Of a stretch of 64,000 bases of DNA, positions 8,874-60,334 are shown piece after piece (within the stretch, counting starts at the first letter, position 1; the number at the start of each line of letters is the position of its first letter). A model generated the notes under the pieces. It saw nothing but the letters and a program-made list of their open reading frames with translations, did not search any database and was not told where the DNA came from. The DNA lies in assembly GCA_965112735.1 (NCBI GenBank), contig OZ218959.1:2294001-2358000 (forward strand), in the 5' to 3' direction. The DNA is from Phaeosaccion multiseriatum. Taxonomy: Eukaryota > Protista > Ochrophyta, other classes. A program made the translations under genes and the position numbers.

Positions 8874-8940
8874 GTAAGAAGACATCGAATTGGTCGCGTT
8901 TGGCGGCTGGTACTGAGTGCGAGGAACCCTAACTGCCCAT

Positions 8941-9404
8941 CTCCTCCTCCTCCTCCTCCTCCTCCTCCTCCTCCTCCTCCTCCTCCTCCTCCTCCTCCTC
9001 CTCCTCCTCCTCCTCCTCCTCCTCCTCCTCCTCCTCCTCCTCCTCCTCCTCCTCCTCCTCCTCCTCCTCCTCCTCCTCCTCCTCCTCCTCCTCCTCCTCC
9101 TCCTCCTCCTCCTCCTCCTCCTCCTCCTCCTCCTCCTCCTCCTCCTCCTCCTCCTCCTCCTCCTCCTCCTCCTCCTCCTCCTCCTCCTCCTCCTCCTCCT
9201 CCTCCTCCTCCTCCTCCTCCTCCTCCTCCTCCTCCTCCTCCTCCTCCTCCTCCTCCTCCTCCTCCTCCTCCTCCTCCTCCTCCTCCTCCTCCTCCTCCTC
9301 CTCCTCCTCCTCCTCCTCCTCCTCCTCCTCCTCCTCCTCCTCCTCCTCCTCCTCCTCCTCCTCCTCCTCCTCCTCCTCCTCCTCCTCCTCCTCCTCCTCC
9401 TCCT
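8941..9404 (+). repeat. (CCT)n microsatellite, ~460 bp
   Basis: Pure trinucleotide run. Confidence 0.97.
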
Positions 9405-10342
9405 CGTCGCTCCTCCTCCTCCTCCCCTCCTCCTTCTCCCCGCGCCTTCTTCCTGCGTGTCCGAGGCCTCCTACTGCTGTTACTGCTGCTGCTCTGCGGC
9501 GTGTAGCTACTGCGGTGCTGCCGCAGCCGCTCCTTCTTTTTTTTCTGAAAGAGGGACTGCCATCGTCGAGGCAGCGACCATCGCCACTTTTTGGAGAAGT
9601 CGATTTCCGTGGGAAATAGCCCTATTTTTCAATTGCTATTTTTCACCTATTATATTTTTATTTTTAGGCGAGGGGACCGCATTGAAAAAATAAAATTTGC
9701 CCACCTCAGAGCCGAACAGAAGCAAAAGAAGAAAAGAATTGAAGGAAGGAAAACAAAGCCACTCACGGACGGAGAGGAGAGAGGCGGGGTGGGGAGGGCG
9801 AGTGGAAGGGTCAAAAAGATTCGCTTCCCATGGTTGCCGACGGCTGCTTATGGTTCCTTCACGTGCTCTTGATACTGCTCTTGCAGATCTGTGGCGCGCA
9901 GCCACGGGAATGCTGCTGTTCTCTTGTGAGAGGTGGGGGAAGCCGGTTGAACGATGGAGAGCAATTTTGAATTTTGAGGGGGCTTCACACAAAAGGCAAA
10001 ATGTAGCTCCACATCGATCCACACACCTCTCCTCTACACACCTCTCCTCTGCTCCCCGCACCTTCCTCGGGCACTATTTGTCACCTATTTTATTTTTGGG
10101 CGAGAGGGGACCCGCCCGCCGCCGCCGCACCCCGCCGCCCGCATTCGCGGGAAATCAATAATTTTTTTAAAGTGTAAATTTTCAGAGCTGAACAGAAGCA
10201 AAAGAAAAAAAGAAGTAAAGGAAGGAAAACAAAAAGAAAGGGGGGGAGGCAGTGCATAGTAAGTAATACCTTGCTTGTCAGTACCATTGTGGTGAAAGAG
10301 AGAGAGAGTTTGTTGAAAGCAGCAACAGCCTCGCTGAGCGTC

Positions 10343-13300
10343 ATGAGATCTTTCCTCGGTGCCCTGCTGCTCAGCAGCAGTGGTTTCGTCTTTCAGGTGC
10401 GCGCAAGGCAAGGGGGCGAAGCGATGCTTGGATCACCCCTCCTCCCTTTTCTTCTCCTTCTTGAATGGTATCATCCAGCCCCTCTGCAGCGCACACCGAC
10501 GCGTGAGCGAGCCGGGTCTGGCTGGTGTGCTTTCTTGCCTGGGCAGTCAGCCAAAGTAACCTGCGTCCTCTCCTCCTTTTTTTCCGTCTCTCCCTCTTTC
10601 TTCCCGGCCGGGCCTGTTCACTGCCTACCCCATCTACTACTCGCTCAGCTCGCGTCGGCGGCGAGCGGCACCGCCGCCATCGTGGAACGAGCTCTACACC
10701 AGTCTGAACAAGACTGCTCTGCCCTATGCCTCAGGGAGAACCCTGCGGAGCCCTGCTTTGTGGATCCTTCCTGCGCGAGTGGAGGTGAGGAAAAAATGCC
10801 CGCACTTCTTACGCCCCTCTCAGCCCGCCCGCTCCTTCTCCTCAGGCAGCAGCAGCCATCACTACTCATCTCTAGAGTGCGAAGCTGCTGACCTTCTTCC
10901 GTGACCTGACTGTCCTCCCCTCCCCTGCCTATCCTGCTGCTCTCGCTCTGCCTAAATGCGCACCCATAGGCATCGGGTGCAATGCTGCGGGACTTGGGAC
11001 GGAATGTAGATTCTGCGGCTTCAGCATCTTTGATCCTTGCCCGGCAGCTGACGCATCGACGGGAGCCCCCTCCGCGGCACCTCCTTCCCCTGCGTCACCG
11101 ACAAGCCCTCCGAGCATCAGCACCTTGTCCCCTTCTTCTCCGGCACCAACCCCTCCGAGCGACGCAGGAGTAGGAGACAGTTGCACCGTACGCTGTCGGC
11201 AGGAGAATCCGGCGGAGCCTTGCTTCTTCGACCCTTCCTGTGCAAGTGGCGGTAAGTGACGTCATCACTACGCCAGCACCAGCCATCCGCCAGTCACTGT
11301 CTGCTGCTGCCCTTGCTTCCTTCTCCCTCTAAGGTCTGACCTTCCCCCCGCCCCTCCCCGCCCCTCCTCCCTGTCCTGCTGCTCTCACTCTGCCTAAATG
11401 GGCATCCACAGGCATCGGGTGCAATGCACGGGGTTTGGGAAGGGATTGTAGGTTTTGTGGCTTCAGCATCTTTGATCCGTGCCCAGACGCCTCACCTTCG
11501 ACCTCCCCTCCGACGCCTACTTCCGTGCCCGCCGCACCCACCACGCCTTCTGCTCCTGCGCCGACAAGAGCCCCAAGCAATGCAGGAGGAGGAGGAGGAG
11601 GAGTCGACGACGCCTGCTCTGCCCGCTGTCACTCCAGCGAACCATGCTTCCTGGATCCTCTGTGCCTGGACTGCGCTAGAGACCCTCGCTCTTGTAAGTA
11701 GTAGCACTAGCTAGATTGTACGCCGCCGCCAGCCATCCTGCTTTGTGTGCCTTCCTCACCCCGCCTTCGTTTTCATCATGTCAACTAGCGCTGCTCACCT
11801 CCTCGCTCTCTCATCATCATCGTCATGTACCTCCCCCCCCCCCTACCCGCATTCTCTTGATTCTCTTCAATGTCCATAGGCATCGGGTGCAATGCACGAG
11901 GGTTGGGACAGGAGTGTAGATTCTGTAACTTCTCCTTCTTCCCGGACTGCCCAGCGGTCGCCAATACGGTGACCCCGACATCGCCACCGACGCCAGCTCC
12001 AGTGGCCATCCACACCGCGACGCCAGCTCCAGTGGCCATCCCACCCACTCAGGTTTGAAGCGTATCCTCTCCGCCTTGGGCTCTAGTCTCCCTTGCCTTG
12101 CTTGCCTTCTTTCCTCTCTCCTCTTGTCTCCCGTATAGCTACTCTCCACATCAGCACCTTTAGCTAATCCTGACTGGCCCGGCAGACTATGATTCCTTCT
12201 CTCAGGCATGTATTCATTCCGTGGTACGTTTTCTTGCTGTGGCTGCTTCTGACGCGTAATGCATGCATCCATCATACTCCCATCGTCTGGTGCTCTCCCC
12301 CTGCCTGTCCTGCGTCGTCTCGCTCTCCCTCAGGCCCCAACCACCGTCGCTCCAACCACCACCCCTCCGACCCCCGCGCCCTCGACTTCAGTTCCGACTG
12401 CTGCTCGGACTCCGGTAGGTGATATGACGCGGTGTGCTCCTTTTCTCTCTCCTCTTTGTCTCCTCCCGTATACCCTCCACATCAGCATCTTTGATCCTTG
12501 CCCGGCAGACGATGATTCCTCCTCTCAGGCATGTATTCATTCCGTGGTACGTTTTCTTGCTGTGGCTGCTTCTGACGCGTAATGCATGCATCCATCATAC
12601 TCCCATCGTCTGGTGCTCTCCCCCTGCCTGTCCTGCGTCGTCTCGCTCTCCCTCAGGCCCCAACCACCGTCGCTCGCGAGTGCCTCGAGGAGGGGGCGGA
12701 GTGCTCGGCATCCTTCTTCTTCGAATCAGCTTGCTGCGGTGACTTGAGCGATTTCGGTGCCGGCGGCTTCTGCATCGGCGACGCCACTGGCACCGGCCCC
12801 TTCATTGGCACTTGCTCGGCGAGTCGTGGCCAAGAAGGGGAGAGCTGCACGGAAATTTTCGGCGGCTCCTGTGACGAAGACCTTCTTTGCGTGGAGGGTA
12901 GCTGCGCTGCACCAGGAGGTGAGGGGGAGAGCTGCACGGGAGGTTTAAGCTACGACAACACCTGTGTCGAAGACCTCCTTTGCGTGGACGGTAGCTGCGC
13001 TTCACCAGGAGGTGAGGGGGAGAGCTGCACGGGAGGTTTATTCACCAACACCTGTGTCGACGACCTCTTCTGCGTGGACGGTAGCTGCGCTTCACCACGA
13101 GGAGGTGAAGGGGAGAGCTGCACGGGAGGTTTATTCACCAACACCTGTGTCGAAGGCCTCCTTTGCCTGGAGGGTAGCTGCGCTGCACCAGGAGGTATTG
13201 GCGACAGGTGCGAGGTGGACGAATTGAACATCTTTATCGATACGTGCGACGCAGAAGTTATTCCGATGCTTTTCTGCATCGAGGGGACGTGCAGCGAGTG

Positions 13301-13979
13301 CATCGTGGAGGGCGCGGAATGCTCGGCAACCTCCTTCCTCGAATCAGCTTGCTGCGGTGAGGAGGACTTCCTTGGAAGGGCCGGCGGCTTCTGCGTGGGC
13401 GACAGTACCACCACTGGCAACGGCCCCTTCATTGGTACTTGCGTGAGTCCTCGCCAAGAAGGGGAGAGCTGCTTGGGAGATTTCGACACTAACTCCTGTG
13501 ACCGAGGCCTCTTTTGCCTGGAGGGTAGCTGCGCTGCACCAGGAAATGTTGGTGATACGTGCGAGAAGGACGAATTCTTTAACAATTCGTGCGAGAGAGG
13601 ACTTCTCTGCATCGAGGGGACGTGCAGCGACAGCAGCGAGTGCCTCGTGGAGGGGGCGGAGTGCTCGGCATCCCTCTTCCGCTCATCAGCTTGCTGCGGT
13701 GACGTGAGCTTCTCTGGTGCCGGCGGCTTCTGCATCGGCGACAGTACCACTAGCAACGGCCCCTTCATTGGCACTTGCTCGGCTAGTCGTGGCCAGGAAG
13801 GGGAGAGCTGCGCGGGAGATTTACTGAACGGCTACTCCTGTGCCTCAGGCCTCTTTTGCTTGGAGGGTAGCTGCGCTGCACCAGGAGGTGTTGGTGAGAA
13901 GTGCGAGGTGGCCGAATTTGACGACTTTAACAATACGTGCGAGGGAGGACTTTTCTGCATCGAGGGGACGTGCGAGTGA
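10343..13979 (+). CDS. Secreted Cys-rich, Pro/Thr-rich (mucin-like) repeat protein, multi-exon
   Basis: ATG 10343 MRSFLGALLLSSSGFVFQ|LASAASG (signal peptide); three modules C..C..EPCF.DP.C..GIGCNA.GLG..CRFC.FS.F..CP separated by P/T/S linkers, each split by an intron; long final exon (~12657-13979) of acidic Cys repeats (GESC..C...L.C.EGSC; C..EGAECSA..F.SACCG). Confidence 0.75.
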
Positions 13980-13988
13980 TTCTAGGGG

Positions 13989-14174
13989 TGTTGTGATAAG
14001 TATCGCCATTTGTGACTGAGCACTATATCGACGTACAATATCGATGTGGATATCGATGTTCATGTATGGCCACGGCCATCACTTCCTTGAACGCATCTCT
14101 CAGTAGGTATTATTAATACACGAGTTGACACTACTCTAGCTTGTCCCTGTCATCGTAGAGGAGATATCGCAACA
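13989..14174 (+). repeat. 5' LTR of the copia element
   Basis: Identical by eye to 19208-19393. Confidence 0.97.
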
Positions 14175-14287
14175 CGACAGCTGTCGCGACACTTCACAGC
14201 TAGCTGGTTCTACGTAGTCGGCGACGGCACACAGGCGAGTTTTGGTCGGATAACTCAAGTGAGAGAGAAGGAGTCCTTTCGTTAGCC

Positions 14288-15256
14288 ATGCCAGGCGCGG
14301 AAGAAGAAGGCGTTGAAAAGGCGGACGCAGCGGCGCCCGTCAGTGCGAGTTCCGCGATAGAAGGAGACGCACAGCAGCAGATGGCTGAAATGATGGAAAA
14401 GATGATAGCGGCAGCGTTGGCCAAACACATCACACAGCAAGGAGTGCCCACGGCAGCGGCCGCAGCACCAGTCACTATCTCCTCAGTCGGAGGAACAGTG
14501 ACCCCCAGCGGGGGGGGGAGTACAGCACAGCAGCTGCTAGAACTCACGTTCAAGCCGAAGAACAATGAGTTTGACAAGAAGTTGGAATCGGAGGGAGTGA
14601 TGCCTCTCTTGCGATTTATGCGAGCGGTCACGGATCACATAGGGGGGATGGGGGCAAAGGCATTCTTGGTGGATAGTGATAAGATCCCCAACGCAGACGA
14701 CGCCTCCCGGGACTCTAAGTATGCCCTGACGTTCAGTCTGTACCAACAGACGGGCCTCAAGATTTTGGAGGCCATTCCCTCGGACATGAGGGATGCCATA
14801 GAAGAACGCACTCGCACAGCGCGGTTCCAAGTGGACCTGGTACTATTGATGCAGGCAATCAAGGAGGCAGTGATGGGGAGCACGCAGTCACAGCGACAAG
14901 AGTTTCTCACCTCCGAGATGCACGATCTGAGGCCAGGGGTGGGGGAGACGGGACTTGCCTACCTCAACAAGTTTCTCCAACTCAACGTGTTGATGACGGA
15001 GGAGCAGCTTCCTATGTCCTACTCCATCATCAAGGACAAGTTCCTCAGGCGTATGGGGCAGAGATGGGAGTCGTTCGGCCAAGTGCACGGTCATTCGGTA
15101 GAGACAGAGGACGAGTTTAATCGGTTCAAACAGCAAGTGCAGCGGTTTGACAGTGACCTCCAAGCGCAAGCGAGGGAGGCGGGAGAGGACCTTGAGCGGG
15201 GCCTTTTCCACATTTACCAGCAAAGGCAGAAGACACAGCAACCAGCAGGGGGGTAG
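14288..15256 (+). CDS. gag: Copia gag (N-terminal part)
   Basis: 322-aa ORF just downstream of the 5' LTR; the CCHC knuckles continue in the +1 frame. Confidence 0.8.
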   Translation: MPGAEEEGVEKADAAAPVSASSAIEGDAQQQMAEMMEKMIAAALAKHITQQGVPTAAAAAPVTISSVGGTVTPSGGGSTAQQLLELTFKPKNNEFDKKLESEGVMPLLRFMRAVTDHIGGMGAKAFLVDSDKIPNADDASRDSKYALTFSLYQQTGLKILEAIPSDMRDAIEERTRTARFQVDLVLLMQAIKEAVMGSTQSQRQEFLTSEMHDLRPGVGETGLAYLNKFLQLNVLMTEEQLPMSYSIIKDKFLRRMGQRWESFGQVHGHSVETEDEFNRFKQQVQRFDSDLQAQAREAGEDLERGLFHIYQQRQKTQQPAGG

Positions 15257-17426
15257 ACAGACCACCACAGGGGCAGGAGAGAAAGATCGGTCCAACACAC
15301 GCTGTTACAGGTGTGGGAGAAAGGGGCACATGCGGACGACGTGTCCGTCCAAGGAGGAGCTGTGTTTCAACTGCCACAAGCCGGGGCACCAGCGTGCAGA
15401 CTGCCCAAACAGCAGGAAGAAGAAAGATGGCGAGCATGTGGAAGGCTCCACCAGCACCATTTTCAGCATTCCGTGGACGCTACAGGAGAGGGGGAGCGGC
15501 CATTCTCTCTACCATATGTCCAAGCTGAAGTCGGGGGCGGATGGCACACGGCAGGGGCTCGCAGACAGCGGATCGGCGCTCAATGTGTGGCCCAACTTGG
15601 ATGGACTGTACGATTTCTGCGCTCATCAGAGTTTAGTGCAACTCGCAGACGGCAAGTCGCACGCGCAGATAATGGGCAAAGGGAAGGTGAACATCAGCTA
15701 CGTCTCCAACGACGGCAAAAGAGGACTGAAGGGGCTGGAGGTAGTGGTGTCGCCAGACGTACCTTTCTGCATTTTTGCAGAGAAGAACCTCTCAGACCTA
15801 CTGGGGGGGAGCGCAAGGCCAGCGGGGAAGCCAGTCTATTTCGGCCCCTCAGCAGACGCACCAGAGACGGTGCACACGACGCAGGACCCAGAGCTGGGGC
15901 TTGACATGCTACAATTCAAGATCGAGGAGGCCACGGAGCAGTGGAGTGATTACATGACTTACCACTGCAAGAAGGGCCACCGCAACGATCAAGAACTACG
16001 GCGACAGGCCAAGCTGGAAGGCGTGACACTGTGCGGGAAGAGGGCGCCGTGCAAGACTTGCGCAGAGGTGAAGATGACGAAGGCAGCTCAGAGTAAGCAG
16101 TTCATCGACTACCCCAAGGCACCGCTGGCACAGGTAACGCTCGACACCATTCCTCTCGAAGGAGAGCACGTGTTGCAGGCGTGCTGCCCGCACACGGGTA
16201 TGGGCTGGTGCAGGAAGGTGGGGGGAAAGACGGAGGCGCACTTCCAGAGCGTGTATGACGACCTCAACACCACAGTATTCATTCCAGGGGAGAGGACAGC
16301 GGGGTACAAGGTGCAGTGTCTGTCAGCAGACAACGGATCGGAGCTCATCAAGACGAAGGCCGCGAAGAAGATGCTCTACTCCCAGGGCATTGAGGTAAAG
16401 CTGACGGACCCCAATTGTCAAGCGCAGAACGGACTGAACGAGGCTCGACACAAGGAGCTGGCGCGAATGTCTATTCTTTTCATTGAGGAGGCGAAGCTGG
16501 AGGAGCACTCGAAGCAGCTGAGGTTCGTAGCGTACAAGTTGGCGCAGCTTCTCTACAACACCAGGTGCAGGAGGGGGCAGCAGCAGTCCCCCTACGAGCT
16601 GTATTTCAAGCGCAAGCCTGACCTACAGCACCTACACATCTTCGGAGAGCAGGCGAAGGTGCGGGTGGGCAACAAGAAGCACAAGCAGTGGCACAACGAC
16701 AAGACGCACTCGGCAGTGTACGTGGGACAGAGCCCCAACCACAGATCAGCCTGTCTCCTTTTCTACATCCCTTCACAGAAGCGGTTCATCTCCAGCTCGT
16801 CCTACACATTCGTGACGAACCGCAGACACGACGGCACGGTGTTCGGGAGTCACGTGGAGAAGGGGAAGCTACCAGAGACAGCGGAGAAGGAGGATGACAG
16901 CGAGGACGAGGACCAGCCCTCGAGCAGCGGGAGCAGCAGCAGGAGCAGCAGCAGGAGCAGCAGCAGGAGCAGCAGCAGTAGCGCGAGCGGGGGAGGTGGG
17001 GGCGGGACCAAGAGTGGAACCGTCACATGGAACACGAGATTAGAGGAGGCACAGCCAGCCCCACAGCAGCAACAGACATCACGCTGGGAACAGGTTCTCA
17101 CCCGAGAGTTCGTGGAGAAGTTACAACTCGAAGGAGAAGGCCTGGAGCGACGTCAGCACGCCGAGCGGCAACAGAGGGAGCAGACGGCAAAGCAGCAACA
17201 GAGAGAGCAGCAGAAACAGCAAGTAGAGCAGCAAGAGCAGCAGCAGCAGCAGGCAGAGCAGCAACAGGCAGAGCAGCAGCAGGAAGAGCCAACGCAGCAG
17301 GCTGAGCCGCCAGAGAGAGGCAAACTCTGGACATACGAGGTGGCCAAAGATGGCGACAAGGGAGCCAAGGAGCACGACTGGGGCCACGATCCCAGCCTGG
17401 GCCGCACGCGTAGCGGCAAGCACTGA
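15147..17426 (+). CDS. pol: Copia nucleocapsid, protease and integrase ORF
   Basis: Two CCHC knuckles (CYRCGRKGHMRTTC, CFNCHKPGHQRADC); protease LADSGS; integrase HHCC (YHCKKGH..CKTC) and D-D-E (TLDT, SADNGSEL, NGLNEAR). Confidence 0.92.
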   Translation: MTVTSKRKRGRRERTLSGAFSTFTSKGRRHSNQQGGRQTTTGAGEKDRSNTRCYRCGRKGHMRTTCPSKEELCFNCHKPGHQRADCPNSRKKKDGEHVEGSTSTIFSIPWTLQERGSGHSLYHMSKLKSGADGTRQGLADSGSALNVWPNLDGLYDFCAHQSLVQLADGKSHAQIMGKGKVNISYVSNDGKRGLKGLEVVVSPDVPFCIFAEKNLSDLLGGSARPAGKPVYFGPSADAPETVHTTQDPELGLDMLQFKIEEATEQWSDYMTYHCKKGHRNDQELRRQAKLEGVTLCGKRAPCKTCAEVKMTKAAQSKQFIDYPKAPLAQVTLDTIPLEGEHVLQACCPHTGMGWCRKVGGKTEAHFQSVYDDLNTTVFIPGERTAGYKVQCLSADNGSELIKTKAAKKMLYSQGIEVKLTDPNCQAQNGLNEARHKELARMSILFIEEAKLEEHSKQLRFVAYKLAQLLYNTRCRRGQQQSPYELYFKRKPDLQHLHIFGEQAKVRVGNKKHKQWHNDKTHSAVYVGQSPNHRSACLLFYIPSQKRFISSSSYTFVTNRRHDGTVFGSHVEKGKLPETAEKEDDSEDEDQPSSSGSSSRSSSRSSSRSSSSSASGGGGGGTKSGTVTWNTRLEEAQPAPQQQQTSRWEQVLTREFVEKLQLEGEGLERRQHAERQQREQTAKQQQREQQKQQVEQQEQQQQQAEQQQAEQQQEEPTQQAEPPERGKLWTYEVAKDGDKGAKEHDWGHDPSLGRTRSGKH

Positions 17427-17462
17427 CATGCTGTCTCCTCCATACTAGGCCCACTCTTTCTG

Positions 17463-19070
17463 ATGCCAGGCCTAAAGGAGAGCGAGGTACCGATACCGCG
17501 GTCTCTGGCCCAGGCTCAAGCAGGAGAGTACGCGGAGCAATGGACGGAGGCGTACTGGGCAGAGCTCAACGCGATCGAGCAACGCCAGGTATGGGAGGAG
17601 GTTGATTATCAAGAGGGGATGAATGTGCTGCATACAGTCATGCTATTCAGAGCAAAGGTGACTGGGGGACTTGTGGATAGGCTCAAGTGTCGATTTGTCG
17701 TGATGGGGAACGAGCAGATCGAGGGGGAGGATTACTTTGATACCTTTGCACCAGTGGTGGGGAGCTCGACGATGAAGATGTTCTTTGCTATCACGTGCCA
17801 GAAGAAGTGGGTATTGGAGTTTGCAGATGTGGAGACGGCTTTCCTGCATGCACCTCTGCATGAGGGGGAGTACGTGTACATTAGAGCACCAGAGGGCATG
17901 AGAAAGTTCGGGAAGGTGCTGAGGCTGTTGAAGAGTCTGTACGGTCTTCATCAGTCTCCCAAGAGGTGGAACGAGACAGTGGTGGCATTTCTACTCGCAA
18001 TGGGGTGGGTACAGTGCCCAGTGGATCCGTGTCTGTTCGCCAGGTTCGAGGAGGGGGAGCTAATAGGGCTCATCATTCTATATGTAGACGACCTAGGAGG
18101 GTCAGGGGAGGGAAATCTCATTGACTGCACTTTCAAGGAGATTGACGAGCGTTTCAAGTTGAAGCGTTTGGGGTCGAATGTGGGGAAATTTCTGGGAGTT
18201 GAAGTTGACTACGCATTCGAGGCGGGACAGCTCAGGCTTTCGCTAGGAGGGTATCTTAGAGCGATGCTTGAGAAGTTCGACATGACGGAGGTACCTGTGT
18301 ACGGCTCACCAGCAGAGCAGGGGGTACATTTGTCAGTGGGTATGGAGCCAAGCACCACAGAGGAGGAGGAATTCATGCAGGACAAACCATACTGCTCAGC
18401 GGTAGGGTCAATCCTATGGGTTGCCAACTGGGTGAGGCTTGATGTATCCTTCGCCATCATGCAGTGTGCTCGTTTTATGAAGAGGCCGGGGCCTCGACAC
18501 TGGGCAGCATTGCAGCGCATTTTCGGGTACTTTAGAGGTAGTTTAGACTTGGGAATTGAGTTTGATCGAGAGGCGGGGCTTCATCTGGAGGCATACGCAG
18601 ACTCGAGCTGGGCAGATGACGTCGACAGGCGCAGGAGCTCAGGGGGATACGTCGTGACATTCGGCGGGGGAGTGATTGCTCACAAGGCAACACTATTTAA
18701 GGTCATAGCACAGTGCTCTATGGAGAGTGAGTACATGGCCGCAGCGGAAGCAGTGAAGGAGTTGCTGTTTCACAGAGGGATTCTGGAGTTTCTGTTTCCA
18801 GGAGCCAACATGACGGAGTCGATTGTGCACGAGGACAATCAAGGGTGCATTCAGATGGCAAATGGCAACGCGGGCACCAAGCGCGTACGTCACATCGACA
18901 TTCGTTATCATTTCCTGCAGTACCACGTGGACAAGGGACACGTTCGGTTTCAGTACATCAGCACAAAGGACCAGCTTGGGGACATCATGACCAAGGCATT
19001 GGCACCTCAGGTACACAGCGGTCTGGCGGGGCAGATGCTCAAGAAGGGAGACAGGAAAGGGGGGGACTAG
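17463..19070 (+). CDS. pol: Copia reverse transcriptase and RNase H, in frame with the upstream ORF across one TGA
   Basis: RLKCRFVVMG, ADVETAFLH, LLKSLYGLHQSP, LYVDDL; RNase H YADSSWA, SMESEY, EDNQG, RHIDIRYHF, DIMTKAL. Confidence 0.95.
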   Translation: MPGLKESEVPIPRSLAQAQAGEYAEQWTEAYWAELNAIEQRQVWEEVDYQEGMNVLHTVMLFRAKVTGGLVDRLKCRFVVMGNEQIEGEDYFDTFAPVVGSSTMKMFFAITCQKKWVLEFADVETAFLHAPLHEGEYVYIRAPEGMRKFGKVLRLLKSLYGLHQSPKRWNETVVAFLLAMGWVQCPVDPCLFARFEEGELIGLIILYVDDLGGSGEGNLIDCTFKEIDERFKLKRLGSNVGKFLGVEVDYAFEAGQLRLSLGGYLRAMLEKFDMTEVPVYGSPAEQGVHLSVGMEPSTTEEEEFMQDKPYCSAVGSILWVANWVRLDVSFAIMQCARFMKRPGPRHWAALQRIFGYFRGSLDLGIEFDREAGLHLEAYADSSWADDVDRRRSSGGYVVTFGGGVIAHKATLFKVIAQCSMESEYMAAAEAVKELLFHRGILEFLFPGANMTESIVHEDNQGCIQMANGNAGTKRVRHIDIRYHFLQYHVDKGHVRFQYISTKDQLGDIMTKALAPQVHSGLAGQMLKKGDRKGGD

Positions 19071-19207
19071 TTTTAGTTCAGTAGTTTTAGTATGAGGTTT
19101 TCAGGACTTTGTCTCGGGGGGGTTTTAGGGCAAGTCAGGTGTTTCCTCATTGTGTTTGTGGTAGAGTGTCAGCTATCAAGAGAGATAGTGATTCAGTCAT
19201 AGGAGGG

Positions 19208-19393
19208 TGTTGTGATAAGTATCGCCATTTGTGACTGAGCACTATATCGACGTACAATATCGATGTGGATATCGATGTTCATGTATGGCCACGGCCATCA
19301 CTTCCTTGAACGCATCTCTCAGTAGGTATTATTAATACACGAGTTGACACTACTCTAGCTTGTCCCTGTCATCGTAGAGGAGATATCGCAACA
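19208..19393 (+). repeat. 3' LTR of the copia element
   Basis: Identical by eye to the 5' LTR; followed by TSD AGGGG. Confidence 0.97.
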
Positions 19394-23470: not shown

Positions 23471-25267
23471 TCCTTTCCCTTGTTCTTTTGGCCTGACTGC
23501 TGTAATTGTCGTAGCTACCGTAGGGTTCTCTCCCTCTCTCCCTCTCCCTCTCCCTCTCCCTCTCCCTCTCTCTCGGTGCATGCTTTTCTCCCTCTTTCTC
23601 TGCAATAACACACCCACTCCCCCCCCCCCTCTCCCCTCTCTCAAACAAACGGCTGGTGCATAATTCATTGGCTTCTCAGCGCCGGCGTACCTGTCCTGTT
23701 TGCCGCCTCGAACTTCCTTCCCAAGACGCCGACGCCGAAGCTGCCCGGCAGAGGAGAGCGAGGGCAAGGGAAGGTGCAGAGGACTGGAACGACTGGTTCT
23801 CGTAGCTTGACAGGAAGGCCACGACGAAAGGATGGTAAAAGAGAGCTGACTCGATCATGCACGCGTGTTGTGGGCCCACCTTGGAGGAGACGAGTGGAGT
23901 GGGAGGTGCCAAGCAATCCAAGGGCCTCTGACGGAAGGGGAATGGGAGCATGTCTTTGGGCTTCGGGCAGACAAGTCAGACAAGTATGTCTGCTTTGTTG
24001 ACCACCGTGGTGGGGTGGAGGCCGCTGGAAAGGAGACTCCGTTACTCGAGCATTTGCTGCCGTGTGCTACTTGCGGTGCGGTTTCTGCTGCTGTTACTGT
24101 GGACATGTATTGCTCTGTTCGACCCCTGACACGCTATCCGCTATCCGCTATCGAGAAAGTGGGCGATAGCGTGTCAGGGGTCGAACACATACACACACAC
24201 ACACACACACACGCACCCACACTTCCGAACCTCCATGATGGGTTATTCATGTCATAAGTTACTTTCGGATATACACCCACTCCTGCGGAGACCCTCTTGT
24301 CTCGTCTCGCGAGTGCTTCTGCTGAGGGACGAAGGAGTTACATCTCTCCCCTCTCACTCTCCGTCGCCACTCCCCTAAGTAGCCAAAAATCCCGCCCCCC
24401 TTCTATTGACTGTTGGAAGGCCTCAGATGAGATGGTCCTTAATGGTCGGTGTGTCCTATACTACATAGATTCTGAGTGGCAACGGGCCGCTCAGTAATAG
24501 GTGAACTTGGTAAGGAGAGCCTAGCAGCAGGGCTTGCAAACGTGTTCCATCCCGGCTAATATACTGAGTGTTACCACTTGTCTAAGCGACTCTAGTCGCT
24601 TTTACATGACATACTACACCCTTACACCTCCCACTCCCCCACGGCTTCCTGGCTCTTGCTCCACAGCAGCTCCATGTTGTCCTTATTGTTGAAACGCTCA
24701 TCGATGGGCAGGTTCACCGCAGGGCCCCAGCAGCCCCCCATCTTGGTGCATCCGTAGTACTCCCCCGACTTGACCTCGGGCATGAAGGCACAAGTAAGGA
24801 TGCCGCAGGTGCCGTCCTCTGAGCTCTGGGCAAGCATACGTATGCCCCCGACCGCGAACTTTGGCATACCCCCTGACGGTGTGTGTGTGCGAGAGAGAGA
24901 GAGAGAGAGAGAGAGTGCGTGAGTGAGTAAGTGAGGAAGTGTGTGTGTGAGAGAGAGATTGAGTGAGTAGGTGAGTTTGTGTGTGCGTGTGAGAGAGATT
25001 GAGTAAGTAAGTGCGTGTGTGTGTGTGTGCGTGTGTATGGAAAAGGAAGGAGAGACACGACGAGGGGGCGAGGCAAGCGCGTGGTTCATTTAAAAGACAA
25101 TGTGGCTACATGAGGTACAGTTTTGAATGAAATGTGGCAATCGGGTCGTGTTGCGAGAACAAAGACAAGCATCCTGCCATCCACTGCCATGGCTTGGCTG
25201 TGACATCCACTGCCACCGCGTGGGTGTACATAAGATCATGTGAAACATCACGTACCGTCCGTCACAG

Positions 25268-25886
25268 TGTTAGAAGTCGTGCTTTTGCTAGACTGGTACC
25301 TACCCTCTGAATTTAGACCGGGAGGTATCAGTCTAGCAAAAGTACGACTTCTAACAAGACCGTTGCTAGAAGACGAACCCCCCCCCCCCACCGCACATAG
25401 TGGAGAGAAGTAACTCGCAGTCTGAGAATCAGCATCATGGGCCAGCAAGCTGGTAACAGTTTTCGCCGAAAAATACGCTTTTTCACAAGCTACAGCCAGG
25501 GTTCGAACTCGCAATGGCCTTGTGTTAGAAGTCGTGCTTTTGCTAGACTGGTACCTACCCTCTGAATATTAAAAAAAAAATTAATATTCAGAGGGTAGGT
25601 ACCAGTCTAGCAAAAGCACGACTTCTAACACAAGGCCATTGCGAGTTCGAACCCTGGCTGTAGCTTGTGAAAAAAGTGTGTTTTTCGGCGAAAACTGGTA
25701 CCGGCTGGCACCCATTAGTCTGATTCCCAGACTGCGAGTTACTTCTCTCCACTATGTGCGGTGGGGGGGGGGGGGTTCGACTTCTAGCATTAGGGCTTGT
25801 TAGAAGTCGTGCTTTTGCTAGACTGGTACCTCCCGGTCTGAATTCAGAGGGCAGGTATCAGTCTAGCAAAAGTACGACTTCTAACA
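25268..25886. mobile_element. Non-coding palindromic (triple-hairpin) insertion element A, 619 bp, 4-bp TSD
   Basis: Ends TGTTAGAAG...CTTCTAACA; TSD ACAG at 25264-25267 and 25887-25890. Removing the element and one TSD restores NLAMPTVTD, the same length as NLVTTTGTD in the paralogs. Hairpins at 25268-25356, 25523-25630 and 25798-25886. Confidence 0.92.
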
Positions 25887-26127
25887 ACAGTTGGCATTGC
25901 CAGATTGGTGGCGGATAGTCCCGGGTGCCCACACACGGACTTCACCTGCAGCGGTACGTACCACCAACCGTACCACCAAGAACAACAGGACCGAGCAGGA
26001 GAGGAGGGAGAGGGTTCGTCGTTCGCTTTTGTGATGTTGTGATGAACAACCACCCTGGTCACCCACACTCACACCCAAATTCACACCTGCCAGCCGAGCT
26101 CGGGAGGGGAAAGTGTGATGGTGCTTG

Positions 26128-27050
26128 TGTTACGATATAAGGCATCCCAATATGCCTTCAGTATTATCCAAACGTTTGGATAATACTGAAGGCATATTGG
26201 GATGCCTTATATCGTAACAAAAGGTGAGTTCCTTGAGCCCTACACCTTCGCACCGGGGGGTTGGCGCTACCGACACGTTCGTCCCTAAATACTGTCCCTT
26301 TGTTTATCCCACCAGTTTTCACGTGCTTTTTTCAACAGGGTACGACCCTCTGGTATCTCCTTGGGAACCCCCCTCGGGAAACATCATATTATTTTTTTCT
26401 CTTTCCTCAGGTAGGACTCGAACCCCTCTTTCCTCAGGTAGGACTCGAACCCCTCTTTTGTTACGATATAAGGCATCCCAATATGCCTTCAGTATTATCC
26501 AAACGACTCGAACCCCTCTTTCCTCAGGTAGGACTCGAACCCCTCTTTCCTCAGGTAGGACTCGAACCCCTCTTTTGTTACGATATAAGGCATCCCAATA
26601 TGCCTTCAGTATTATCCAAACGGATATCCATTTTTTTAAAAATTTTTTTTTTTAAAAAAATGGATATCCGTTTGGATAATACTGAAGGCATATTGGGATG
26701 CCTTATATCGTAACAAAAGAGGGGTTCGAGTCCTACCTGAGGAAAGAGGGGTTCGAGTCCTACCTGAGGAAAGAGGAAAAAATAATATGATGTTTCCCGA
26801 GGGGGGTTCCCAAGGAGATACCAGAGGGTCGTACCCTGTTGAAAAAAGCACGTGAAAACTGGTGGGATAAACAAAGGGACAGTATTTAGGGACGAACGTG
26901 TCGGTAGCGCCAACCCCCCGGTGCGAAGGTGTAGGGCTCAAGGAACCCACCTTTTGTTACGATATAAGGCATCCCAATATGCCTTCAGTATTATCCAAAC
27001 GCGCGTTTGGATAATACTGAAGGCATATTGGGATGCCTTATATCGTAACA
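26128..27050. mobile_element. Non-coding palindromic (triple-hairpin) insertion element B, 923 bp, 5-bp TSD
   Basis: Ends TGTTACGATAT...ATATCGTAACA; TSD GCTTG at 26123-26127 and 27051-27055; absent from the paralogous intron (single gcttg near 31000). Hairpins at 26128-26219, 26576-26715 and 26955-27050; 117-bp tandem duplication in the left arm. Confidence 0.92.
26723..26760 (+). promoter_or_regulatory. Tandem Pol III B-box-like motifs GGTTCGAGTCC in 27-bp repeats (mirrored on the minus strand at ~26400-26572)
   Basis: Match to the B-box consensus GGTTCGANTCC; unit GAGGGGTTCGAGTCCTACCTGAGGAAA. Confidence 0.55.
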
Positions 27051-29208
27051 GCTTGCTGCTGCTTATCCAAAGACCTCAGCTAAACTACAAAACACACACG
27101 CCTCAATGAAAATGCTTGTACTTTGGAGTGCTGTAACGTGTGTGTTTTTAGGGGGCGAAGAGTGGCTGATGGAGAGAGAGGGGAAGGGAGAAGACTGGAG
27201 AGGCAAGATGGGGGGGGGGATAGATGGAGAGGGAGAGGAAGGAGAGACAGAGACAACCCACAAACCACCCAACTAACCAACCAACCAACCAACCAACTAA
27301 CCAGCCTACCACCCGACCTCACCTTGGAGCCTTTGGTTTGGAGCTTCTGGTGCAGAGCCTGGGCGAAAACGATGTTGGCCTGCTTCGTCTGGACGGAGAG
27401 GGAGGGACGGGGGTACAGCAGATAGAAGAGACAGGACGAGCGGGGGATGGTGGGGGATCCGCAGGAGGGGAGGAGGGGGGGGAAAGGAAGGGGCGGGGTT
27501 CTATATCTCTCCCTCTCTTCTCTATAACCGAAAAGCAACAGACAGAAGGTTAGCTATAACCCAATCCACACTCACCTGCTGGTATCGTACCCACCGGGGG
27601 CCCTTCATCCCCCCAGCCGTCGAATCTCCCCCCAAGTCTCCCCCCTTCTTCTCCAAGTACTTGGCCTCCAGTGCCTTCGGCTGGTTGGCGGCTATGCTGG
27701 AGTGGCTCACTATGCGAGCTTCGCCCTTGCTCTCGGCCGCCTTTTCCAACAGGGGGAAGAGCTCCTTGCTGAGCATGAAGTGACTGAGGTGATTCGTCTG
27801 CCAGCCATTTGAGATTGCCATAGACAAGAGGGAGGGGGGGGGGGGGGTGAGGAGGTGCTGGAGACAATAGGGGTTGAATACCAGTGCCAAAGGCAGGCAG
27901 GCAGGGAGGGAGGGAGGGCGGGAGGGAGCGTAGCTTGAAGTGCTGCTTTGACCCCCTTGCATCTCTGCCACGTGCAGTGTGCACTAGGTTGGCATTCGAA
28001 GACACTAAAAGTATCCATCTTCATCTTCCCGAGCGAGATGCTCTTCCATGGCGTGAGGAGAAGAAACGAGGTGTGCTAGAGACGGACAGACCCGATCGGC
28101 AGTGTGGTGTGTCATCTCACCTGCATCTGAATGTCGTAGCCATCTTTTGTCGCTTTGTCGGCCATCGCCCTGTGCTCCCCCATAGAGATGGAGAGAGAGA
28201 AAGAGAGAGGGACAGAGAGAGAGAAAGAGAGAGAGAGGGAGAGGGAGAGAGGGAAAGAGAGGGAGAGGGAGGGAGAGGGAGAGGAAGAGGAAGATGGAGA
28301 GAGAGAGAGCGGGAGAGAGATAAAGAGATAGAGAAGAGAGAAAGAGAGAGCCGTGCATGTAGGGTGAGCCCAAAGCCAAAGCCAAACAAGGAAAGGCCAA
28401 CGAAGGCCAAGGAAGGCCAAGCAGCAGTAGAGGGCGCACCGCGCACCCCCCCTGACTCACAGCCCATTCACAGCGGACTCACATGATGCCTGCATTGTTC
28501 ACAAGCACATCGATCCCGCTCTTTGCGTACGCGGCCTTGATGGCGTCGATGGCGCTCTTGACAGACGCAAAGTCCTGCAAGTCGCAGTCTATCTGGGATA
28601 TCTTGGAGCTTGCACCGAGCTGCTCCTTCAGGTCCGCGAGGATCTTCTCAGATCTGTGTGTGTGGGGAGGGAGTGAGGAGTGGGTGGGGGGTGAGCGGTG
28701 GGGCACGAGCAAGCTCTCTTTGTCTCGAGTGGTGGGGCAAGGAGACAGTGTCTCTCCCTCTCTCTCCCTCTCTCTCTCGTTCTCTCTCCGGATTGATCAC
28801 TTTCGTGGCTTCAATTCCCTCCCTCGTCTCGTCTGCCCATTCCGTCTTGTTGCAGAAACCATCATCCCCTGTGCCAAGCCCCCCCCCCCCCCCTCTCCGG
28901 CTCTTCAAATGAACACACAGCACACGCACCTCTCGCTCCTTCTGTTAAGCATCACCACCTCTGCACCCTTCTCGGCAGCGGTCCGAGCAAACACTTCACC
29001 CGTTCCGGAGGTGGTGCCTGTGATCACAACCACCTTGCCATCCGCACTCGGGAGTTGGCTCAGCAACTTTGGGTATTGCACGGACTTCTTCGTGCCGGAG
29101 AAAGTGCCCCCCATGGTGAAATCTGGACGTCGAAAGAGACAGAGAAGGGAGCGACAGAGTGAGAGAGAGAAGAGTCGGCAGGGTGCGCGTGAGAGAAAGA
29201 GAGATGAG

Positions 29209-38451: not shown

Positions 38452-47893
<9,442 letters not shown>

Positions 47894-54899: not shown

Positions 54900-55988
54900 C
54901 TATCTTGGTGACCAATGTACGGGAAGAACCTTACTGCTACTCTTCCCACCTCCAATACTTGCAGCTGTCTTACTTACTAAAATGTTGATAGAACTAGGAC
55001 GGGGGGCGGCGACCGAATCTCTTCGAGTGAATGCCCCTCTGAAAACGCAGTAGAACACTATGAGTTCCCAGCCCACACCGATTAGTCTGAGCGGTATCAT
55101 TGCAGCAGAGGGCCGCTGACGCATCCACGTACTCATCGGATCAACGAGGGTGAACAGAAGGATACAGGAGCTTCCAACCCAGATGGAGGATACAGCACCC
55201 AGCACGTGCTGGCACTGCGTCTTGACCTTGCGCAAGTCTGGCCCTAGCTCGGGCATCGTCTTAAGCATGCCGAGCAGGCAGGTGGTGGCCACTACAATAG
55301 CTGCACAGATTGCGCTGATAAAGGGCAGCGCAAGGGCGAGCCCAGTCCAGAACGTGAAGTAGCCTGGGAGAACAATCAGTACCACACACGTTGATGTCCC
55401 TGCGATGGCCACAGCAGCCAAGATAACCCAAAATCGGCTCTCCACCCAGTTCCGGAGCCGAAGAGCGGTTGGTGCGCGAGACAGGAGGCTCCGCGGTAGG
55501 GCAGCAAGCCACAGACGAAGAACCAGCCATCCATTTCCTATGAGAAACCAAGTAGCAGCACCAAGAAAGCACCAAGCCATCATGGCGTCGTCCAGCACCC
55601 CTGTTCCACTGTAGAACCTCCCAGTATTGATGAGTATGGCTGTTGTGGTGAAGAGGATACAAAGCATTGCTCCTATCAACCGGGTTTGTGCTACACCCGT
55701 CTTCGTCTCCTGCAGGAGTGCCTTCACGCCTCCCCTACGCCGTATATGCCTGCCGAGGATGAACACCACATCGACCAGGTGGACAGCAAGGATGAGCAGA
55801 AGTACCATCTCGGGAACATCAAGGTACGCCTTGGCAACACAAGCACTGTCTCCCACGATGTTCTTGTCGTAATATCCGTCCCCACAGCCGCAAGTCGCCG
55901 TAGTTTCATCGCACACGCCTTCGCTGTGGCTTGGGCGGCCAAAGGTCGAGGCCGCCTCGTCCCGGCACACCAGCACGCACGCAGACAT
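54900..55988 (-). CDS. Intronless protein with N-terminal EGF-like Cys module and ~7 transmembrane helices, copy 1
   Basis: 362-aa ORF; C..C..HSEGVCDETTATC.CGDGY..SAC followed by seven hydrophobic segments; conserved in four paralogs. Confidence 0.8.
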   Translation of the reverse strand: MSACVLVCRDEAASTFGRPSHSEGVCDETTATCGCGDGYYDKNIVGDSACVAKAYLDVPEMVLLLILAVHLVDVVFILGRHIRRRGGVKALLQETKTGVAQTRLIGAMLCILFTTTAILINTGRFYSGTGVLDDAMMAWCFLGAATWFLIGNGWLVLRLWLAALPRSLLSRAPTALRLRNWVESRFWVILAAVAIAGTSTCVVLIVLPGYFTFWTGLALALPFISAICAAIVVATTCLLGMLKTMPELGPDLRKVKTQCQHVLGAVSSIWVGSSCILLFTLVDPMSTWMRQRPSAAMIPLRLIGVGWELIVFYCVFRGAFTRRDSVAAPRPSSINILVSKTAASIGGGKSSSKVLPVHWSPR

Positions 55989-56147
55989 CCTTCCTAAGAG
56001 TCGATATCATTAGTCGGTGACTGTAAGTAGATATTAAATGTGAAAGGGAAAGGGGAATGAAAAAAAGAGAAAAGAAAAGAAAAACTTCCGAAACCGTTCC
56101 AACACACACACACTTGCCGCCCCCTCTGCGGGAAGAAGAAACAAAAC

Positions 56148-57610
56148 TCACTGACTCACTCTCACTCACTCACTCACTCACTCACTCACTCACTCACTCA
56201 CTCACTCACTCACTCACTCACTCACTCACTCACTCACTCACTCACTCACTCACTCACTCACTCACTCACTCACTCACTCACTCACTCACTCACTCACTCA
56301 CTCACTCACTCACTCACTCACTCACTCACTCACTCACTCACTCACTCACTCACTCACTCACTCACTCACTCACTCACTCACTCACTCACTCACTCACTCA
56401 CTCACTCACTCACTCACTCACTCACTCACTCACTCACTCACTCACTCACTCACTCACTCACTCACTCACTCACTCACTCACTCACTCACTCACTCACTCA
56501 CTCACTCACTCACTCACTCACTCACTCACTCACTCACTCACTCACTCACTCACTCACTCACTCACTCACTCACTCACTCACTCACTCACTCACTCACTCA
56601 CTCACTCACTCACTCACTCACTCACTCACTCACTCACTCACTCACTCACTCACTCACTCACTCACTCACTCACTCACTCACTCACTCACTCACTCACTCA
56701 CTCACTCACTCACTCACTCACTCACTCACTCACTCACTCACTCACTCACTCACTCACTCACTCACTCACTCACTCACTCACTCACTCACTCACTCACTCA
56801 CTCACTCACTCACTCACTCACTCACTCACTCACTCACTCACTCACTCACTCACTCACTCACTCACTCACTCACTCACTCACTCACTCACTCACTCACTCA
56901 CTCACTCACTCACTCACTCACTCACTCACTCACTCACTCACTCACTCACTCACTCACTCACTCACTCACTCACTCACTCACTCACTCACTCACTCACTCA
57001 CTCACTCACTCACTCACTCACTCACTCACTCACTCACTCACTCACTCACTCACTCACTCACTCACTCACTCACTCACTCACTCACTCACTCACTCACTCA
57101 CTCACTCACTCACTCACTCACTCACTCACTCACTCACTCACTCACTCACTCACTCACTCACTCACTCACTCACTCACTCACTCACTCACTCACTCACTCA
57201 CTCACTCACTCACTCACTCACTCACTCACTCACTCACTCACTCACTCACTCACTCACTCACTCACTCACTCACTCACTCACTCACTCACTCACTCACTCA
57301 CTCACTCACTCACTCACTCACTCACTCACTCACTCACTCACTCACTCACTCACTCACTCACTCACTCACTCACTCACTCACTCACTCACTCACTCACTCA
57401 CTCACTCACTCACTCACTCACTCACTCACTCACTCACTCACTCACTCACTCACTCACTCACTCACTCACTCACTCACTCACTCACTCACTCACTCACTCA
57501 CTCACTCACTCACTCACTCACTCACTCACTCACTCACTCACTCACTCACTCACTCACTCACTCACTCACTCACTCACTCACTCACTTCCTCCCTCACTTA
57601 TTCACTGACT
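56148..57610 (+). repeat. (TCAC)n array 2, ~1.45 kb
   Basis: Nearly pure tetranucleotide run. Confidence 0.97.
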
Positions 57611-58156
57611 GATTGAGCGAAGAGCAAACCTAGTCACCTAGGGCACACCCTGAAGGCTGCTATGGGGCCGATGGTGGCACGGCGTGCACCACAGCACCGT
57701 GTGCGATGTCACAAACTTAAAAGGAGGGTATATATTTACAAGGGATAGGCGCTATACATTGGGCCGTCCGTCGGCGACCCCTCCTCCGCCCCTCGTATGG
57801 GAGCACAGGCCTACTCTGACTGCTCTGACTGATGCACAGGGAGAGAGATCCTATTCCTCTGACCGCGCGGTGTTTTCCCACGGCGAGAAGCAGCAGGTGT
57901 GCCTAGGGACCCACCCGTCGGCCCTCCTGCTTTCTCCTCCCCCCCCTTGAGCCTTGTGCTTGCACCCACCGAGCTGCCAACTAGGCTCGGGAAGCATGCC
58001 TTATGATGGCTCAACGCATCATTCCTCCTCTTCTTCCAACGGAGCCCGGCGGCATGGGCCTTTCCCCGCTCTTCCCTTCGGACAGCAGGGTAGCGTGTGC
58101 CACAGCAGCACGCAGAAGCCAACAGAGAAGAGGAAGAAGAGCCTGTAGCTGCACGC

Positions 58157-59248: not shown

Positions 59249-59489
59249 CCGTCATAAGAGTCGATATCAAAAGTCGGTGATTGTAAGTAGATGTTAAATG
59301 GAAAGGGAGAAAAGAAAATTGTTTTGTTTTTTTCCGAAAGGGTGTGGTTCCCACACATGGGGGGGAGTGGGGGGCTGGGTTCTGCGGGTATCCTCCGCGA
59401 CTCTGCCTCCGCTCTCGCTCTGTGGAAAGCAGGGAAAGAAGAAAAAAGTATAAACTCACAGCCTCTGTCGCTCCCTCTTTGACATGAAA

Positions 59490-60020
59490 TCACATTCTCT
59501 CACTGACTCACTGTCATTCACTCACTTACTCACTCACTCACTCACTCACCCACCCACTCACTCACTCACTCACTCACCCACCCACTCACTCACTTCCTCA
59601 CTTACTCACTCACTCACTCACCCACTCACTCACTCACTTCCTCACTCACTCACTCACTCACTCACTTGCTCATTCATTCACTCACTCACTCACTCACTCA
59701 CTCACTCACTCACTCACTCACTCACTCACTCACTCACTCACTCACTCACTCACTCACTCACTCACTCACTCACTCACTCACCCACTCACTCACTCACTCA
59801 CTCACTCACTCACTCACTCACTTACTCACTCACTCACTCACTCACTCACTCACTCACTCACTCACTCACTCACTCACTCACTCACCCACTCACTCACTCA
59901 CTCACTCACTCACTCACTCACTCACTCACTCACTCACTCACTCACTCACTCACTCACTCACTCACTCACTCATTCACTCACTCACTCACTCACTCACTCA
60001 CTCATTCACTCTCTGACTGA
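59490..60020 (+). repeat. (TCAC)n array 3
   Basis: Visible repeat. Confidence 0.95.
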
Positions 60021-60334
60021 GTGAAGAGCCACCCTAGGGTAAGCCCCGGTGGGCCGGTCTGACGGTCTGGGGCCGATGGTGGCACGTTGTGTGCCGCAGC
60101 CACGGGGCAACACTTCATGCCCTGTCTTGTTGTGTGATGTGCATAAATAAATATTTTAACGCGGTCCCAAGGTGCCTACTGTAATATATATATCAGGCAC
60201 ACATGCGCTTTGACGGAGAAAAGTCCACCCCGCCCAGTACCTCGCTCTTCCCTTCGGACCAGCAGGGTAGCGTGTGCCACAGCAGCACACAGAAGCCAAC
60301 AGAGAAGACGAAGAGGTCGCCCGTAGCTGCATGC

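Follow-up and report, generated by a model that had tools for sequence, protein, structure and literature searches.

Results

Two palindromic elements in the last intron of a dehydrogenase gene

We analyzed a stretch of 64,000 nucleotides of Phaeosaccion multiseriatum DNA (assembly GCA_965112735.1, contig OZ218959.1, positions 2,294,001 to 2,358,000 of the forward strand), hereafter the window, in whose coordinates all positions are given, and we focused on two non-coding palindromic elements in it, E1 (25268-25886) and E2 (26128-27050). This DNA is nuclear, from a eukaryote rich in introns; microsatellites are numerous, and the G+C content is about 51-59% (~56%). Between ~24600 and 37100 it contains three tandem copies of a 3.93-kb unit, and each copy carries a multi-exon gene for a short-chain dehydrogenase (SDR) on the minus strand. 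Units 2 and 3 are almost identical, and unit 1 is ~10-23% diverged in the intron that holds E1 and E2. This is the last intron of the minus-strand SDR gene of copy 1, situated between the exon coding just past SDR profile positions 101-150 and the last exon (~24615-24891), and the two elements lie within it at a distance of 241 bp from each other.

Both elements are bounded by exact target site duplications (TSDs), which were recognized in the sequence and by alignment to the repeat copies: ACAG on the left (25264-25267) and right (25887-25890) of E1, and GCTTG on the left (26123-26127) and right (27051-27055) of E2. When the three flank pieces of repeat copy 1 were aligned separately to copies 2 and 3, both sites proved to be uninterrupted and free of the elements in these copies, with the target sequence present once at each site. 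The spacing of the repeats, 5500 versus 3929 bp, fits the addition of ~1.55 kb of DNA. We also scanned for inverted TGT...ACA pairs with exact 3-6-bp duplications and used only the non-microsatellite rows of the output; E1 and E2 were the only such pairs, and no sub-element with duplications of its own was found inside either of them. These data show that E1 and E2 are true insertions, each inserted once, with a staggered cut of 4 bp for E1 and 5 bp for E2 and with TGTTA/TAACA as the points of joining. An earlier note on this DNA, made from the letters alone, had named the same duplications and the empty sites in SDR copies 2 and 3, and the alignments and the spacing bear it out.

A shared layout of three hairpins and two arms

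E1 and E2 are both organized as hairpin-arm-hairpin-arm'-hairpin, and in both the hairpins are inverted pairs of a single module with TGTTA...TAACA ends. The module is 45 nt long in E1 and 47 nt long in E2 and is present in 6 and 7 copies, respectively, compared with 0 expected from shuffled sequence. As single-stranded DNA, the hairpins have folding energies between -36.6 and -76.2 kcal/mol and z-scores between -12.5 and -24. Tips are short in the terminal hairpins, and the central hairpins of both elements have an A/T-rich palindromic extension and a homopolymer loop, which lengthen the tip by 18 nt (E1) or 46 nt (E2); the tip order, outer-central-outer, amounts to two alternating junction types. 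The relationship between the hairpins extends into the arms. In both elements, the ~25 nt that follow TAACA at the outer positions are related to those that follow it at the inner ones (the score was reached in 30-35 of 3000 shuffles). Therefore, every arm has inverted ends of its own, and the repeated block exceeds the module.

By sequence and self-comparison, E1 is an imperfect non-coding palindrome of 619 bp with TGTTA...TAACA ends. Its left terminal hairpin (25268-25356, 89 bp) consists of two 45-nt modules and has two G.T mismatches in the stem and an imperfect tip. The 166-bp arm (25357-25522), whose two ends (~25 nt each) are inverted relatives of one another, leads to a perfect central hairpin of 108 bp (25523-25630) with an A8 loop and an A/T extension that is not found in the terminal hairpins. 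On the other side, the 167-bp arm' (25631-25797) is an inverted copy of the arm and is 87-94% complementary to it outside the center, and the right terminal hairpin (25798-25886, 89 bp) has the left stem as a direct repeat and an inverted tip. When E1 was aligned with its own reverse complement, 568 of 626 columns were identical. There are no mismatches within 94 nt on each side of the center, and 25 mismatch or indel columns fall in the outer ~210 nt. The outer asymmetries are probably older than this insertion, or the center was probably homogenized afterwards.

The ends of E1 require a closer description. The two terminal hairpins have a pair of G.T mismatches in common on the plus strand, so that the stem arms (34 nt) do not differ when read as direct repeats. 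The tips (~21 nt) are reverse complements of one another except for two bases and thus resemble a flip/flop pair. Simple mirror symmetry, in which the mismatches would be swapped, and simple direct repetition, in which the tips would be kept, were both unobserved. No single simple model yields this pattern of stems and tips; it would result either from conversion of the ends as direct repeats together with inversion of the tip, or from a single template serving for both ends. Among the mismatches of the palindrome as read on the plus strand, 8 are of the G.T type and 2 of the A.C type, numbers that are too few and too interdependent for a claim of strand bias.

E2 is a near-perfect non-coding palindrome of 923 bp with TGTTA...TAACA ends and seven identical 47-nt modules. 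The terminal hairpins on the left (26128-26219, 92 bp) and on the right (26955-27050, 96 bp) are both perfect, and the tip of the right one is 4 nt longer. The central hairpin (26576-26715, 140 bp) is likewise perfect, with a T6 loop and a 20-nt A/T-rich palindromic extension on each side. The inner end of the 239-bp arm (26220-26458) is made of two 27-bp units carrying GGTTCGAGTCC, and a diverged copy of this unit forms the outer end of the arm. The arm' (26716-26954, 239 bp) is an inverted copy with only 2 mismatches in 333 nt, the module included. The mirror symmetry of E2 is broken by a one-sided tandem duplication (26399-26622, period 117, 1.9 copies, 100% identical), whose junction lies inside a 27-bp unit with one or two bases shared. 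This duplication contributes an extra module and partial 27-bp units to the left half only (26459-26575, 117 bp), and this module is the fourth internal one.

The mapped layout and modules confirm the triple-hairpin architecture that the earlier note had described, with terminal hairpins of 89-96 bp that each have their own TGTTA...TAACA ends. Its statement that each whole element is a palindrome is true of the mirror layout but must be tempered, since E1 is imperfect (568/626) and E2 has the one-sided 117-bp duplication and unequal tips. It had also found the modules and arms of the two elements to be dissimilar, and sequence comparison of E1 with E2 agreed: nothing significant is shared beyond short words. 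A common sequence was rejected after the best local match, which lies beside the inner modules (12 of 16 positions), was equalled in 187 of 3000 shuffles.

A third, solitary hairpin of 72 bp (24116-24187) with TGTT...AACA ends, perfect arms of 23 nt and a 26-nt loop lies 1.08 kb to the left of E1. Its right flank passes straight into a (CA)n tract, and no target duplication is visible around it. It is possibly the solo hairpin of a third family. Two independent insertions no more than 241 bp apart, together with this third hairpin nearby, hint at a local hotspot.

The resident copia element and the ends of E2

The window also contains a copia-type long terminal repeat (LTR) retrotransposon on the plus strand (13989-19393), with LTRs of 186 bp at 13989-14174 and 19208-19393. 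The LTRs have TGTTG...CAACA ends and are 100% identical, so this element is young, and it is flanked by a 5-bp duplication, AGGGG. A single in-frame stop interrupts its pol, and gag is read in a different frame and overlaps the start of pol; this arrangement of frames may be programmed. The closest database relative of its reverse transcriptase is 45% identical. An open reading frame (ORF) of 465 aa (12582-13979), which has internal repeats of ~93 and 342-351 nt and no Pfam match, stops 9 bp short of the 5' LTR.

The terminal 11 nt of E2 (TGTTACGATAT) agree with the reverse complement of the 3' end of the copia LTR (TGTTGCGATAT) at 10 of 11 positions, and the E2 end agrees with the 5' end of the LTR at 8 of 10 positions; E2 and the copia element both have 5-bp duplications. 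The ends of E1 showed no match to the ends of the copia LTR. By our own rough estimate, and with TGTT taken as given, the probability of such a match by chance is ~0.001 per comparison and ~0.01 over the comparisons made. To judge by these ends, the copia element is a candidate source, or a candidate relative of the source, of the enzyme that moved E2.

Coding capacity, retroelement signals and copy number

Neither element has coding capacity or involves any protein family; the sole long ORF over E2 arises from mechanical reading through the palindrome. No transfer RNA (tRNA) was detected in E1 or E2 by ARAGORN, and none was found in Rfam at E up to 10. The Rfam hits between 25500 and 26780 were sub-threshold only and belonged to plant MITE-like microRNA precursor families (MIR869 with 131.6 bits, against a gathering score of 330), hits that arise because of the long perfect hairpin shape. 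A B-box-like word, GTTCGA, had been noted previously in both elements and is indeed present, with 8 of the 9 matches in the window falling inside E1 and E2, although the degenerate pattern was shaped partly by the general box consensus and partly by the letters of the window, and the count is a lead only. These matches collapse to one independent occurrence per element, and about 2 such shared words are expected by chance. The motif is thus real, but no tRNA-like structure accompanies it in the ARAGORN or Rfam results and its sharing is close to the chance level; as a B box of RNA polymerase III (Pol III), GTTCGA is no more than a candidate word. A tRNA-derived short interspersed element, or another Pol III unit, was rejected, as the B-box-like word is present alone and no tRNA-like region was found.

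Signals of reverse transcription were also sought. A purine tract is absent before the right-hand (3') hairpins of both elements, and the resident copia element has one. After the 5' hairpins, no primer site of the TGG type occurs in the first bases past any TAACA. The copia element likewise lacks a TGG start, and the first bases after its 5' LTR form a perfect palindrome of 12 nt. Terminal repeats that behave as direct repeats were seen in the stems of E1 only. A standard terminal-repeat retrotransposon in miniature (TRIM) was rejected because there is no purine tract, the two arms mirror each other and the hairpin in the center is unlike those at the ends.

Searches for exact module copies and for copies with up to 3 mismatches found none in the window outside E1 and E2, and sensitive blastn of both elements against the masked window gave no match. 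Scans of viral contigs and metagenomes found no further copies of either element.

Other features of the window

A multi-exon RPB2 gene occupies ~39500-47700 on the plus strand, with many introns rich in (GT)n and (GA)n. Its closest database relatives are just 70-71% identical in the conserved domain, and therefore the host lineage is poorly sampled. On the minus strand, three tandem ORFs of 361-363 aa lie at 54900-61420; the first two are 94% identical, none has a Pfam match, and their hydrophobic sequence suggests a membrane protein. A very long (CCT)n microsatellite (~0.5 kb) is found at ~8940-9450 within overlapping mechanical ORFs.

Discussion

A possible mode of movement

Two sequences that are unrelated and nevertheless share one elaborate layout argue for a common mechanism. 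We propose that E1 and E2 are non-autonomous, non-coding fold-back elements with an inverted-dimer layout that were moved at the DNA level by an integrase-type DDE enzyme, a reading to which we give about an even chance. Movement at the DNA level is preferred because signals of reverse transcription are absent and because a full transcript would be double-stranded. The earlier note had likewise placed a mechanism behind the shared layout, and that part of its argument stands; the particular routes that it favored, reverse transcription or rolling-hairpin copying, are not established.

The ends and the duplications point toward the kind of enzyme. TGTNR ends with 4-5-bp duplications mark Gypsy-type LTR elements and the Ginger1 and Ginger2 transposons (PMC2836005). 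IS481EU elements have TGT...ACA ends and mostly 4-bp duplications, include non-autonomous families, and show a 5-bp duplication in 1 of 11 full-length copies of one family (PMC10045372). Hence the previous assignment of TGT...ACA ends with 4-5-bp TSDs to DDE enzymes related to retroviral integrases is supported by both sources (PMC2836005, PMC10045372). An enzyme of the GingerRoot/IS3EU kind was rejected, as the 6-bp duplications and mostly TA...TA ends of that group (PMC10045372) do not fit E1 or E2. The suggestion that the integrase was borrowed has gained the 10/11 match between E2 and the copia LTR and the equal duplication length, but this new evidence concerns E2 only.

According to the proposed mechanism, both elements would have been moved in trans by a DDE enzyme of retroviral-integrase kin, for which an LTR-element integrase, a Ginger/TDD transposase and an IS481EU-like transposase are candidates. 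The module of 45-47 nt would be its binding site and the outermost TGTTA/TAACA its site of action, and in the case of E2 the enzyme would likely come from the resident copia lineage or a close relative. With the module plus ~25 nt as the basic block, an arm would have one block at either end, the two being inverted relative to each other. A pair of arm units would then meet head to head at the hairpin with the A/T loop and lie tail to tail at the hairpins outside. This is the pattern to be expected if a palindrome-ended strand folds back and primes its own copying, which would yield an inverted dimer, and the dimer would persist since it offers perfectly matched ends. Within the proposal, this dimerizing step is the weaker part, with perhaps one chance in three. 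A head-to-head, tail-to-tail concatemer of a hairpin-ended monomer would look the same.

Several points weigh against this proposal. An integrase of the retroviral type requires free linear DNA, and if the enzyme was that of the copia element, the source of this DNA is unexplained. The duplications differ, 4 bp for E1 and 5 bp for E2, and either two enzymes or a single loose one must be assumed. The target sites, ACAG and GCTTG, do not fit the Ginger1 preference (CCGG/CCGT), and neither of the two is AT-rich, as Ginger2 would prefer. The direct-repeat stems of E1 with their two shared mismatches look more like copying from one template than like cut-and-paste movement. Pfam scans of most ORFs of at least 150 aa returned only copia gag/pol and host genes, and no transposase was found in the window. 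Additionally, E1 and E2 are known from one copy each, and neither a family nor repeated mobility is shown by them. The match between the ends of E2 and the copia LTR, given a chance of ~0.01, is suggestive and not decisive.

Alternative explanations

Other explanations must be weighed against the same observations. E1 and E2 could be ordinary MITEs (miniature transposable elements with inverted repeats) with long inverted repeats and no special copying, in which each half represents one end of an unseen autonomous transposon with three binding modules. A single event, either deletion of internal sequence or duplication of an end, would then have created the palindrome, and nothing more than a shared superfamily would lie behind the similar layouts. 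Fold-back elements usually have end modules in several copies and long inverted repeats, the one-sided 117-bp duplication in E2 shows that modules can be multiplied by slippage, and in E1 the 25 columns with a mismatch or indel that lie beyond the central 94+94 nt suggest a palindrome that was inherited and not remade at each move. However, the 45-47-nt modules include the cleavage end and are 100% identical in all seven E2 copies (7/7), which far exceeds the usual reiteration of binding sites, and the inverted ends of the arms and the two alternating tip types are left unaccounted for. We therefore rate this explanation as unlikely, albeit the least so among the alternatives. A slightly lower standing is given to the view that both are TRIM-like LTR retrotransposons with palindromic repeats, copied in copia- or gypsy-type particles and integrated by the integrase of that element, with the three-repeat form being the known tandem form in which one internal part was flipped by recombination across a palindromic repeat. 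Tandem TRIMs, in which n repeats alternate with n-1 internal parts, are a common form (PMC6934838), the ends of E2 mimic the end of the copia LTR and have the same duplication length of 5 bp, and stems that are identical as direct repeats with two shared G.T mismatches, in an E1 whose arms differ by 6-13%, are expected from one template. This view is at odds with the lack of a 3' purine tract and of a TGG-type or tRNA-like primer site beside the 5' repeat, with a central hairpin that does not repeat the terminal ones (in E1 the tip is longer by 18 nt, in E2 by 46 nt) and with internal parts that are inverted and not direct; moreover, a full-length transcript would be a near-perfect double-stranded RNA, and the 4-bp duplication of E1 is unlike that of the resident copia element.

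Explanations built on hairpin replication address the geometry more directly. The earlier note favored a hairpin-ended monomer that is copied by a rolling-hairpin or self-primed process into concatemers, from which a piece of dimer length is integrated by a borrowed integrase. Concatemers of this kind predict that one and the same terminal module forms a palindrome at all junctions, and they also predict the inverted ends of the arms, the alternation of outer, central and outer junctions and the overall mirror symmetry, all of which are seen; the tips of E1, inverted relative to each other on stems that are not, resemble a flip/flop state. Nevertheless, full flip/flop would have swapped the stem mismatches of E1 as well, and they are unswapped, while outer parts that are 6-13% diverged around a perfect center do not fit a freshly copied dimer. 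No nickase, resolvase or other replication gene was found among the window ORFs scanned, and no eukaryotic mobile element of this kind was found in the literature searched. This account is doubtful in our judgment, and we place it a shade below a related version, itself improbable and ranked just under the TRIM-like view, in which a class of tiny non-coding elements multiply as hairpin-ended DNA by snap-back or rolling-hairpin replication into dimers joined head to head and tail to tail, mimic the LTR ends of resident LTR retrotransposons and are inserted by the integrase of these with no need of a primer site or purine tract. Finally, the palindromes might be fold-back chimeras of assembly or sequencing, since long perfect palindromes, and that of E2 especially, are a known product of fold-back reads. 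Against this stand the exact duplications that flank both elements at sites uninterrupted in two paralogous copies, the patterned divergence of the E1 halves, and the one-sided duplication and unequal terminal tips of E2, features that an artefact would not produce, and we regard an artefact as very improbable.

Implications

If the layout recurs across many copies and families of this genome, it would represent a separate strategy by which non-coding parasites exploit enzymes of the integrase type, with each hairpin serving as a complete pair of ends. Under the same condition, it would also provide a concrete case of the long-discussed link between LTR-element integrases and DNA transposons, on the copia side, Ginger being known from the gypsy side. 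For the host, E1 and E2 are candidate causes of local instability in one of the three SDR gene copies. Both are intronic, and in the pre-mRNA they would fold into hairpins that are long and perfect, which makes them candidates for the production of small RNAs; if transcription of the intron includes them, they would give hairpin RNA.

Comparison with known systems

Ginger1, Ginger2/TDD and IS481EU resemble E1 and E2 in their TGTNR or TGT...ACA ends, in inverted ends of some tens of bp and in having non-autonomous derivatives. Their duplications measure 4 bp in Ginger1, most Ginger2 and many IS481EU elements, and 5 bp in TDD-4/5 and one IS481EU-7_TV copy, compared with 4 bp in E1 and 5 bp in E2. 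Ginger1 shares the type of end, but ACAG and GCTTG do not meet its 4-bp CCGG or CCGT/ACGG duplication. The ends and duplication lengths of Ginger2/TDD fit, but its AT-rich target (RTATAY) is not seen at either site (n=2). In IS481EU, the ends and duplication lengths fit as well, and the inverted ends are mostly <50 bp, against a module of 45-47 nt; duplications of ~15 bp also occur. IS481EU is known only from parabasalids, whereas the host of E1 and E2 is an intron-rich eukaryote with ~56% G+C. In none of these groups is a terminal module described that makes up entire hairpins at the two ends as well as the central one.

Fold-back elements and palindromic MITEs are similar to E1 and E2 in that they are small and non-coding, consist almost entirely of inverted repeats, and have sub-repeats in the arms and a short A/T-rich center. 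Terminal inverted repeats flanked by a target duplication, a mark of non-autonomous inverted-repeat transposons, are present in both E1 and E2. The classical fold-back families typically have 8-9-bp duplications and are not known to have TG...CA ends. E1 and E2 are unlike these families in their 4-5-bp duplications, their integrase-type ends and the complete, outward-facing ends of each hairpin.

The literature searched, the scope of which did not extend to Repbase and Dfam, gave no description of a module making complete hairpins at the ends and in the center alike. The observation is real and the layout is uncommon; a claim to a new class rests on two single copies. The earlier statement that known MITEs, Foldbacks and TRIMs are not built in this manner is in line with these searches for the full layout but needs to be narrowed by partial precedents in tandem TRIMs, KolobokP and fold-back elements. 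Forms with the order repeat-internal-repeat-internal-repeat occur in tandem TRIMs (PMC6934838), which are also like E1 and E2 in their size of <1 kb, terminal repeats of ~100 bp and TG...CA ends, and like E2 in the 5-bp duplication. Unlike tandem TRIMs, E1 and E2 have palindromic repeats, mirrored internal parts and a distinct central repeat, and they have no TGG-type primer site and no purine tract.

KolobokP DNA transposons have terminal repeats with their own inverted ends and occur as solo repeats and as multimers of the form (repeat-internal)n-repeat (PMC9587614). They differ from E1 and E2 in that their repeats are 450-660 bp long, direct and non-palindromic, their internal part encodes a transposase and a nuclease, and they belong to another superfamily. 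The target duplication of KolobokP is also different. What KolobokP has in common with E1 and E2 is a terminal repeat that carries its own inverted ends and is able to stand alone, combined with the formation of multimers at the DNA level.

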